This document shows positions 53,171-56,612 of a stretch of DNA of 64,000 bases, piece after piece. Origin of the DNA: Chrysemys picta bellii. Lineage: Eukaryota. Within the stretch, counting starts at the first letter, position 1. Every line of letters begins with the position of its first letter. The position numbers and the translations under genes are program-made. The notes below the pieces were generated by a model. The model was not told the origin of the DNA and did not search any database. It saw only the letters and a program-made list of their open reading frames with translations. The DNA lies in assembly GCF_011386835.1 (NCBI RefSeq), contig NC_088797.1, positions 30,194,001 to 30,258,000 on the forward strand, written 5' to 3'.

Positions 53171-56064
53171 ATGGCAAGAAGGGGGGCTCGTGGGGGGCTG
53201 GGGCGCTGCTGGGGCTCCCTGGCAGCGGGTGGCGGAGCGAGGGGGTGGGGCTGGGGTCCAGGGGCACTGGGGGCGGCGGGGAGCGTGCGCGGAGAGAGCA
53301 GTGGGGGGGCGGGAGCCTGGTCCTGAGTGTTGGGGGGGCGGCAGGTGGCACTGTTGGGGGGAGGGGTCCAGGCCCCAAGACTGGGGCTACTAGGCCCGCT
53401 TCCCATTGGCTAGTCGGGAACAAGTAGTTGGGGGGCAGTTGGAGACAGCAGCCATGCTGCGTCTTGCGGGAGATGGGCGGCGTGGGAACTCCAGGGGTGT
53501 CTGGGGTGTAGGGCAGAGTCTCTTCCCCTAAGAGATTGGGTGGGAAGGGGGTGAGGCTGTCTTTGGGGGGCAGATGGCCCGGGGGGCAATGGGGTATAGG
53601 GCATGGCTGGGGGGAGGGTGTCAGACAGTCGGCAACAACTCTGTCTCTTCTTGCAGGCAGACCAGCTGACAGAAGAACAGATCGCAGGTGAGACACCCCT
53701 TCATCCTGCAGCCCCAAAATTATCTTTTATATGGGGGAACCTGGTGCTTCACAATATGGTCAGGCCTGGGCCCAGGAGCCTGTTTGCCCAGGGTGCTGGG
53801 GGGAGGGAGGGGACTGCAGGGAGAAGGGACCCTGTGGCAGGCCCCCATGGTACTGATTCCTCTCCTCTCTCCTGGCAGAATTCAAGGAAGCCTTCTCCCT
53901 TTTTGACAAGGATGGGGATGGCACCATTACCACCAAGGAGCTGGGTACCGTCATGAGGTCCCTAGGGCAGAACCCCACCGAGGCAGAGTTGCAGGACATG
54001 ATCAATGAGGTGGACGCTGATGGTGAGAGGGAACTGTGAGACGCGTGGGGAGTGGGAATACAGCCACTGCACTGGCGGCAGTGGGGGTGCGGGGGGGAGT
54101 GATCAGAGCTGGGAGGTAGGACTCCTGTGTTCTGTTCTTAGCTATGAGCTTGGAGAAGTCTTTTTCCTGCTCTGTGCCTCAGTTTCCCTTACCATTCTTT
54201 GTCTGTTTAGACTATGAGCTCTGGGCTAGGGACTGAGAGAAGGATTTCTAGGCTTATCAGGGGAATGGAGAGGAGACCGAAAGAGCTGGGTTTGTATAGT
54301 TTGGCTAGATGAAGCTTGAAGCGTGGGGGGGTGGATCTGATTGTTCTCTGTAAATATAGCAGGGAGGAAACCCCAAGGAAGATGAAGAGTGAGTTTCTGG
54401 AACAACCTCCCAATAGGAGCAAACATTTATATGTTTCTGATTGAGATTTTGACGGGCCTGCCTGCAATAGCAGGGCCTGGACTTGATGACCCAGGAGGCC
54501 GCTTCTAGCCCTATGTCCCTGTATGATACACCTAATCCCAACCCCTGGTACTATCTCTCCTCTGGGAGTGCTGCTGTTTACTATCCTGCTCACACAGCTG
54601 AAGGTCACTCACGGCTGAGCTGAGAATCACCTCATCCTAGGGCCTATCACTTCTGCATCCCAAAGTGATGCAGGCCCCATGGAGAGCTGCCTGTTCCTGT
54701 TCCAGTGTGTGGGTTGTACCTGAGTTAAACCCAGGGGGTTGACCTAAGTTTTGTAGGCCAGTCCCCTGCCCAAACTACAGAGCTCTGGGGTTTGTTTCTA
54801 GGCTCCCCACATCTCTTCAGAGGGGGTGAAGAGGAATCCCCTCAAGGCAAACCCACCACTGGAGGGAAGGGGCTGTTTCAGTGAATTCCCCAGAGCTCCC
54901 TGCCAGTACTTGGGTGTCTGGATTCGTGGGAGTAAGGGTACTGGATGCTGCGGGGGGGGGGGAGGGGGGAGTGGCTATGCAGGTCATCCAACCCAATGTC
55001 AGTTAGGCCCGGCACTAATGGCCTCTTCCCCTGCCCAAGGGAATGGCACCATTGACTTCCCTGAGTTCCTAACCATGATGGCAAGGAAGATGAAGGATAC
55101 GGACAGTGAGGAGGAGATCCGTGAGGCCTTCAGGGTGTTTGACAAGGTGAGGCAGGGGGGCTTCATCCCCCTTATCCCTGGTGGCTGTGCGTGTCCCCCT
55201 CCCCCCTTTTTCCCCAGGAGCTCCAAAATAGCAGCTGGGGCTAAACTCCTCCCTGCAGGGACAGCTGAGTCCAATACTCCCTCCTGTGTGCATGTGCTTC
55301 ACAACTGGACACCTCCCCCTTCCACATGGGGTTGGGGGCTGGAGTCATCACCTACCTGAGATAGGTGGTTGTGTGTGTTGGGGGAGGGGGGGAATGCGGT
55401 CTACCTGCTTTCCCCTCCCCAGGGCCTGTGCTGAGGCTGACAGGATGGGATCCCTGTGGTGCTTGTGCTAACTGGGAGCAGTCCTATGGCCCCCTTGCCT
55501 GACATGGTGCCTGCCCCCCCAGGATGGGAATGGGTACATCAGTGCAGCCGAGCTGCGCCACGTCATGACCAATCTGGGTGAGAAGCTGACAGATGAGGAG
55601 GTGGATGAGATGATCCGGGAAGCTGACATCGATGGTGATGGACAGGTCAACTATGAAGGTGAGGGGGGCGGGGCAGCTTGCACTGACTGTCCAAAGGGCA
55701 CAGCTGCTGCTTAGGATAGTACCACTCTGCAGAGGGCACTTGCTCCCTTAAGGACTCTCCAATGTAGTAGGTAGGATGGGTCTGGGAGTCAGGATGCCTG
55801 GGTTCTCTTTCCAGGTCTGCTGCTTTCTGCCTCTTGCATTGTGACAGGCATAGCCTGGTGAAGGGGCTTGGAAATGTCACAAATGCTGTTAACTCTAGGG
55901 AATGGGAGACTTAGCAGAGCACCTCCAAGTGCAGCCTGGGTGGGGGCGGGGGGATGGTTTCTGCCTGAGAGAAGGCAGGGGTGGGGTGAATCAGGCTTGT
56001 CTCATGCTCTCTGACCCTGTGCCTTTGCTTTACAGAGTTTGTACAGATGATGACAGCTAAGTAG
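53171..56064 (+). CDS. CALM: Calmodulin, 149 aa, canonical vertebrate sequence: join(53171-53173,53657-53687,53879-54022,55040-55146,55523-55658,56036-56064); not assignable to CALM1/2/3 by synteny
   Basis: Exon sizes 3/31/144/107/136/29 are those of vertebrate CALM genes; translation [17 protein letters not shown]...[10 protein letters not shown]; intron 1 has a GC donor. Confidence 0.96.
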
Positions 56065-56606
56065 GCTCTGGTAGGGCATCCCCCTCACCTGTACAGACTG
56101 GATGGACTCTTCCTACTGCTGCCACATGTCACCCCTGCCCTGTCCCAGGTGCCATCCTGTCATCAGCAGCTGCTCTCCTTTGAGGACAGTGCATGCTTTC
56201 ACCTCTTCTGCAATGTGTGCTTGTATGCTGGGCACCACAGGGACAGGAGCCCAGCAGGGCCTATGGCCTGCTTCCCCCAAGTGTTTTGGTGGAGCAGGCC
56301 CCTGGCTGCTGGAGGGCTCTGCAAACTGCTTTCCATCTGACAATTCTTCCCCCTCCCTCCCATATTCAGCATCTCACCTGAATGCTCATGGACTGTGGTA
56401 GGGCAGCTGACAGTGTCTCTTTGACTGGCCACTGTTGCCTTCCTGGACGTGTCTGCATATGTTGGATATTGTGACTGTTAATTTCTTAACTGCTTAATAT
56501 TCACCCCCCTTAATCTCTAATTCCTTTCCTCCCCTCCCCCCCCAAATCCATATTGGCTTCCGGGGATGCTTCGGTTCCATTCCAGATGATGTAAGGTTTT
56601 ATTTTC

Positions 56607-56612
56607 AATAAA
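56607..56612 (+). terminator. Calmodulin polyadenylation signal
   Basis: AATAAA followed by a GU-rich downstream element. Confidence 0.7.

Follow-up and report, generated by a model that had tools for sequence, protein, structure and literature searches.

A 64,000-nucleotide (nt) stretch of the Chrysemys picta bellii genome (contig NC_088797.1, positions 30,194,001 to 30,258,000), hereafter the window, carries an intact calmodulin gene between SLC3A2 and RPS6KA4, in addition to the CALM1, CALM2, and CALM3 genes that this turtle has elsewhere. We consider it probable that this gene is functional, a fourth canonical CALM, and the CALM member of the paralogon that resembles human 11q13. Human CALM genes number three and are located at 14q32.11, 2p21, and 19q13.32 (PMC6291462), and according to the abstract of a review all vertebrates have three calmodulin genes (PMC8532581). 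In our literature search no report of a fourth CALM gene in vertebrates came to light, absence there being no proof of absence.

The window gene and its three turtle paralogs

The gene occupies window positions 53171-56064 on the + strand, and its features are as follows.

52900..53400, +, promoter and CpG island, with CCAAT at 52967, CACGTG at 52991, and a TATA-like TATTTAAA at 53015-53022
53171..53173, +, end of exon 1, consisting of the ATG start codon and followed by a GC donor (splicing)
53174..53656, +, intron 1, read from the sequence as GC-AG type
53657..53687, +, exon 2, codons 2-11 plus 1 nt (splicing, comparison with other loci)
53879..54022, +, exon 3, covering EF-hand 1 and the first part of EF-hand 2 (Pfam EF-hand_1, E 9e-12)
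55040..55146, +, exon 4 (splicing, comparison with other loci)
55523..55658, +, exon 5 (splicing, comparison with other loci)
56036..56630, +, exon 6, coding to 56064: last 9 codons, TAG at 56062-56064, a 3' untranslated region (UTR) of about 565 nt, and AATAAA at 56607-56612; the exon end is placed from this polyadenylation (polyA) signal
56432..56585, +, a pair of collinear 3'UTR blocks, 56432-56467 and 56528-56585, also conserved in the lizard ortholog

Spliced together, the six exons give a 450-nt open reading frame (ORF) encoding 149 amino acids (aa), and this product is an exact substring of calmodulin-1, -2, and -3 database proteins of marsupials, placental mammals, and fishes, that is, the invariant vertebrate calmodulin by which a canonical CALM gene is recognized. 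The coding exon lengths (3, 31, 144, 107, 136, and 29 nt) and phases follow the conserved CALM pattern; identical lengths occur in all four turtle loci, in the lizard gene described below, and in 11 CALM1/CALM2 loci of other species. Because the gene keeps five introns at the positions typical of the family, a processed retrocopy is ruled out, as the preliminary description of this DNA had argued. Its account of an intact six-exon gene with a promoter and a polyA signal likewise agrees with the splicing, the CpG island, and the AATAAA signal. The island (53000-53399) has a GC content of 0.74 and an observed-to-expected CpG ratio of 0.70, compared with ratios of 0.03-0.25 in its flanks. From the promoter motifs we infer, rather than observe, the position of the transcription start.

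The whole 2.37-Gb assembly was searched with calmodulin exons 3 and 5, and calmodulin peptides of 100% identity were found at four loci: the window, which belongs to C7, C17:5.455 Mb, C4:124.07 Mb, and C3:176.84 Mb. All four have exons 2-6 of equal lengths, proper splice sites, and an identical protein, while their coding sequences (CDS) are 80-86% identical, with every difference synonymous. The GC content at third codon positions (GC3) is 0.68 in the window gene, 0.78 in the C17 gene, 0.42 in the C4 gene, and 0.30 in the C3 gene. The neighbors of the three other loci identify them. Matches to TTC7_N represent two genes, one at C4:124.43-124.57 Mb, lying between the C4 calmodulin gene and an RPS6KA5-like exon in the order CALM-TTC7B-RPS6KA5, and one (TTC7A) at C3:176.49-176.565 Mb, 270 kb from the C3 calmodulin gene. 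Striatin matches represent three genes, on C4, C3, and C17 (5.255-5.263 Mb), the last of which (STRN4) is 190 kb from the C17 calmodulin gene, and the only alpha-amylase-domain match other than SLC3A2 is SLC3A1-like and located at C3:173.79 Mb, 3 Mb from the C3 calmodulin gene. We take the human arrangements to be CALM1-TTC7B-RPS6KA5, TTC7A-CALM2 with SLC3A1 nearby, and CALM3-STRN4. The C4 locus is CALM1, the C3 locus is CALM2, and the C17 locus is CALM3, each at its expected syntenic position. The preliminary description had made a fourth gene depend on the presence of these three; since all are in place, the window gene is an extra fourth copy, and its interpretation as a relocated CALM1, CALM2, or CALM3 ortholog was rejected.

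Among the turtle paralogs, CALM3 resembles the window gene in its identical protein, six exons, first coding exon consisting of ATG only, compactness, and GC richness, but it lies on another chromosome with STRN4 and EHD2 as neighbors instead of SLC3A2 and RPS6KA4, ends with TGA instead of TAG, and shows no intron or UTR similarity to the window gene. CALM1 shares with it the identical protein, the exon structure, and a convergent link to an MSK kinase gene (RPS6KA5 and RPS6KA4, respectively), but is AT-richer, has a CDS identity of 81.6%, and is separated from its kinase gene by 0.5 Mb, with TTC7B in between.

These comparisons also bear on whether the locus could be an assembly artefact, with a copy of CALM3 or another CALM gene misplaced on C7. 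The chance of this is negligible: nothing was found in its favor, CDS identity to the other loci does not exceed 86% and introns and UTRs are unrelated, independent sequencing runs of several organism labels hold 0.89-0.93 of the sequence words of the gene, and an independent lizard assembly shows an equal arrangement, on account of which an assembly error was rejected.

Two tandem, diverged, intronless calmodulin-like ORFs were also found at C1:7.947 Mb and 7.956 Mb (locus coordinates 1228-1677 and 1228-1899, both on the - strand). They are 87-91% identical to calmodulin over exon 3, one of them is 99% identical to a Terrapene triunguis protein, and their bird, turtle, and crocodilian relatives go under the names 'calmodulin, striated muscle' or CALML3, a pattern that points to a turtle of emydid type. 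Like the window gene, they encode 149-aa EF-hand proteins, but they have no introns and a diverged protein, in contrast to its five introns and invariant protein.

The protein encoded by the window gene has been kept under strict constraint. Compared with turtle CALM3, CALM1, and CALM2, its CDS differs at 63, 81, and 80 positions, respectively, all of them synonymous, and compared with the gene at the same locus in the lizard Hemicordylus capensis there are 56 synonymous and 0 non-synonymous differences (proportion of synonymous differences, pS, 0.62). The absence of non-synonymous changes implies complete purifying constraint on the protein in the turtle and lizard lineages, which bears out the earlier claim of strong purifying selection under divergent codons.

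Two observations weigh against a functional turtle gene. The first concerns splicing: AG is present at every acceptor and GT at donors 2-5, but donor 1 is GC (53174-53175; ATG followed by gcaaga), where the lizard ortholog has GT at the homologous site (ATG followed by gtgaga), and a reading of the turtle DNA from the promoter to exon 2 revealed no ATG with GT directly after it. The second concerns expression: sequencing runs provisionally taken for RNA contain 0.38-0.61 of the words of the gene, but also 0.66-0.78 of those of intron 3, so these runs may be DNA or unspliced RNA. Both would fit a decaying or silent copy, in which the GC donor blocks correct splicing of intron 1 and the intact ORF merely reflects recent inactivation. 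Such a copy is very improbable given zero non-synonymous changes against 56-81 synonymous ones, the intact state of the other splice sites, the stop codon, the polyA signal, and a CpG island of the unmethylated type, and the presence of the sequence in the genomic runs under several organism labels mentioned above. The GCAAG donor context generally suits functional GC-AG introns, and turtle intron 1 is probably one of these, spliced from the GC donor. Indirect support for function comes from a non-synonymous divergence of zero, from the 3'UTR blocks conserved with lizard, and from the CpG island and intact signals; expression of the gene is presumed.

Synteny, divergence, and origin of the fourth gene

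Upstream of the calmodulin gene, the first exon of SLC3A2 matches Pfam SLC3A2_N (E 5e-35), and the exons of this gene align in the same order with the SLC3A2 genes of alligator, lizard, frog, ray, and teleost. Downstream lies a two-kinase-domain gene, tail-to-tail with the calmodulin gene. The best PDB match of one of its exons is RPS6KA5/MSK1 (E 8e-27), and an MSK kinase exon of the window has exactly two matches in the genome, the window itself and C4:124.595 Mb; the gene is assigned as RPS6KA4 because its only paralog in the genome adjoins CALM1, which is the RPS6KA5 position. The location between SLC3A2 and RPS6KA4 given in the preliminary description therefore stands.

Several other families have members on the same four chromosomes. 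EHD_N matches occur on C3, C4, C7 (32.9 Mb), and C17, glycogen phosphorylase (PYG) on C3, C4, and C7 (33.5 Mb), FAM161 on C3, C4, and C7, STRN on C3, C4, and C17, TTC7 on C3 and C4, MSK on C4 and C7, SLC3A on C3 and C7, and CALM on all four. These shared families indicate that C3, C4, C7, and C17 carry four copies of one ancestral region, and the CALM genes are, in the sense used for ohnologs, paralogs in regions that share other duplicated families. Orientation is also shared: CALM is convergent with TTC7 on C3 and C4 and with the MSK gene on C4 and C7, and the latter arrangement supports block duplication in the two vertebrate whole-genome duplications (2R). It would be very unlikely for a later duplicate to insert by chance directly beside the only paralog of the CALM1 neighbor and in equal orientation.

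Comparison with other species was anchored on SLC3A2: its first exon, used in a representative search, and named protein clusters supplied the loci that were then compared, two of the anchor proteins being the longest isoform. In Hemicordylus capensis, a gene annotated with a 149-aa product follows SLC3A2 at a distance of 1.6 kb and on the same strand; its exons encode identical calmodulin and it ends with TAG, as does the turtle window gene. The two 3'UTR blocks are 83% identical over 36 nt and 76% identical over 58 nt between turtle and lizard, are collinear at similar distances from the stop codon, and have no counterpart in turtle CALM1, CALM2, or CALM3. In alligator, SART1, SLC3A2, and RPS6KA4 are collinear with the window, but the spacer between SLC3A2 and RPS6KA4 is 1.7 kb (locus 25431-27193) compared with 8 kb in turtle (window 51470-59547) and contains no calmodulin remnant, as though the entire gene had been cleanly deleted. 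In budgerigar, where the order is SART1-SLC3A2-TRMT112-BANF1-MUS81, calmodulin was not found at the locus. Turtles group with archosaurs and lepidosaurs lie outside that group; given this and the lizard gene, the fourth CALM was present in the sauropsid ancestor and lost in the sampled archosaurs. The preliminary description had proposed loss from the mammalian 11q13 locus, and mammals do lack the gene, but the loss is not only mammalian. A look-up of the exact calmodulin protein returned only long loci of the CALM1 and CALM2 types, with STPG4, NRDE2, or PSMC1 as neighbors, which were used as outgroups, and an extended calmodulin isoform in Phrynosoma belongs to a CALM2-like locus that is uninformative for the fourth gene.

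The maximum-likelihood CDS tree sets CALM1, CALM2, and fish calm1-type loci apart, with 92% support, from a group that comprises CALM3 and the window and lizard genes. With the lizard copy in place, synonymous sites near saturation between the window gene and every other CALM, and a position outside the CALM1 and CALM2 clades, the window gene is not a recent lineage-specific duplicate. CALM2 orthologs are 92-95% identical across the recovered amniote loci; by contrast with this, silent sites change rapidly in the region of the fourth gene, and the age of the duplication cannot be read from distances.

Several results speak against a 2R origin. The tree does not separate the window gene, the lizard gene, and CALM3 from one another (70% support), the highest raw CDS identity of the window gene is to the GC-rich CALM3 (85.6%), and by the same measure the lizard gene resembles turtle CALM3 slightly more than it resembles the window gene. 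No calmodulin exon was found within 10 kb downstream of SLC3A2 in frog, ray, or teleost, a reach too short to show regional absence; with no copy seen outside sauropsids, a 2R origin needs survival to the sauropsid stem and several independent losses. These results would fit a segmental duplicate of CALM3 or another CALM gene, formed at the DNA level after 2R in a stem sauropsid, amniote, or tetrapod and landed between SLC3A2 and RPS6KA4, which would be a real gene under selection but not an ohnolog. The Ser, Arg, and Leu codon classes offer one informative site, R127, encoded by CGN in the window gene, the lizard gene, and CALM3, and by AGR in CALM1 and CALM2, which fits the same scenario; the character is weak because GC enrichment would produce CGN too. 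The failure to split the window gene from CALM3 is attributed to saturated synonymous sites and to strong differences in GC3 between loci, similarity to CALM3 tracking GC3 (the window gene and CALM3 both being high, CALM1 and CALM2 low). Either explanation serves for the CALM3 likeness: composition would account for it, and so would later duplication from CALM3. The segmental duplicate would also have had to land beside the only paralog of RPS6KA5, in the convergent orientation seen at CALM1, and to hit the one chromosome that completes the C3/C4/C17 paralogon common to EHD, PYG, FAM161, and SLC3A, and no non-coding similarity of the window gene to CALM3 is left. We regard this explanation as unlikely, though the most serious of those considered. 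The earlier identification of the gene as the missing fourth 2R copy is accordingly supported by the paralog families on C3, C4, C7, and C17, while its 2R age is proposed from synteny and not from a tree that splits it from CALM3. Neither of the two contrary outcomes named in that description, a missing CALM1, CALM2, or CALM3 and a recent lineage-specific duplication, was observed.

Under a 2R origin of the window gene, an ancestral block of CALM (+), TTC7 (-), and MSK (-) would have been quadruplicated in the two whole-genome duplications, after which each copy would have lost different members, leaving CALM1-TTC7B-RPS6KA5 on C4, CALM2-TTC7A on C3, CALM3 on C17, and CALM-RPS6KA4 on C7. In our preferred explanation, the last ancestor shared by turtles and lepidosaurs had the fourth CALM, complete purifying selection has since acted on its protein, and the gene was later deleted in mammals and in the sampled archosaurs (alligator and budgerigar). 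Under a separate CpG-island promoter and with a 3'UTR of its own, it would supply the same Ca2+ sensor as CALM1, CALM2, and CALM3. It is strong synteny, rather than an anamniote sighting, that points to the 2R date and to a pre-sauropsid age. We think it likely, if somewhat less firmly than the presence of a functional fourth gene, that the jawed-vertebrate ancestor had four CALM genes, one per 2R paralogon, and that turtles and lepidosaurs have kept the fourth, its protein unaltered, for more than 450 million years, whereas mammals and archosaurs each deleted it independently; the window also keeps a third FAM161-type gene.

Neighboring genes in the window

The remaining features are listed below.

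988-10242, -, SART1 (Pfam SART-1, E 4e-13), collinear with alligator and budgerigar SART1 and head-to-head with SLC3A2
19123-20430, -, single-exon ORF of 436 aa between SART1 and SLC3A2, of beta-1,3-glycosyltransferase type (Galactosyl_T, E 2e-36)
26000-36000, AT-rich island, GC 0.39-0.42 compared with 0.55-0.62 around it
37187-37948, -, FAM161-type open exon of 254 aa (Pfam FAM161A_B, E 9.8e-8, above the cut-off)
45976..52146, +, SLC3A2 (4F2 heavy chain), coding exons 45976-51470, AATAAA at 52141
57755..64000, -, RPS6KA4 (MSK2-type kinase), recognized exons 59547-63503, polyA signal 57755-57760, running off the window

The AT-rich island contains ORF fragments of reverse transcriptases of the long interspersed element (LINE)/CR1 type on both strands, and similar fragments occur at the alligator, ray, frog, and teleost loci. 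Only three FAM161 loci are present in the turtle genome, at C3:189.76 Mb, C4:112.33 Mb, and in the window. The window exon may represent the third FAM161 paralog of the 11q13-like paralogon and would then be, at 15 kb from the calmodulin gene, another candidate for a missing ohnolog; we know of no FAM161 counterpart at human 11q13.

Meaning for the calmodulin gene family

A fourth CALM gene is an added member of a very well-known family and brings no new mechanism, and because automatic annotation already calls the gene in at least one lizard genome, the advance is interpretive. The count of three calmodulin genes is not valid for all vertebrates, since turtle and lizard have a fourth. Teleosts, with calm1a, calm1b, calm2a, calm2b, calm3a, and calm3b, likewise encode one calmodulin protein in more than three genes, but in teleosts three ancestral genes gave rise to the additional copies through the teleost-specific duplication, whereas the fourth gene of turtle and lizard appears to be a separate lineage defined by its linkage to SLC3A2 and RPS6KA4.

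Calmodulin is a standard example of several genes kept for one identical protein. The window gene would extend this example with a fourth gene under independent regulation, retained since the turtle-lizard split or longer, and would complete the 2p/14q/19q/11q13 ohnolog quartet. It would also offer a natural experiment on dosage or regulatory subfunctionalization, in which it can be asked which expression domain was reassigned or lost after the deletion in mammals and archosaurs. If there were indeed four ancestral CALM genes, the 11q13-like regions of reptiles would preserve several ohnologs that amniote models lack.

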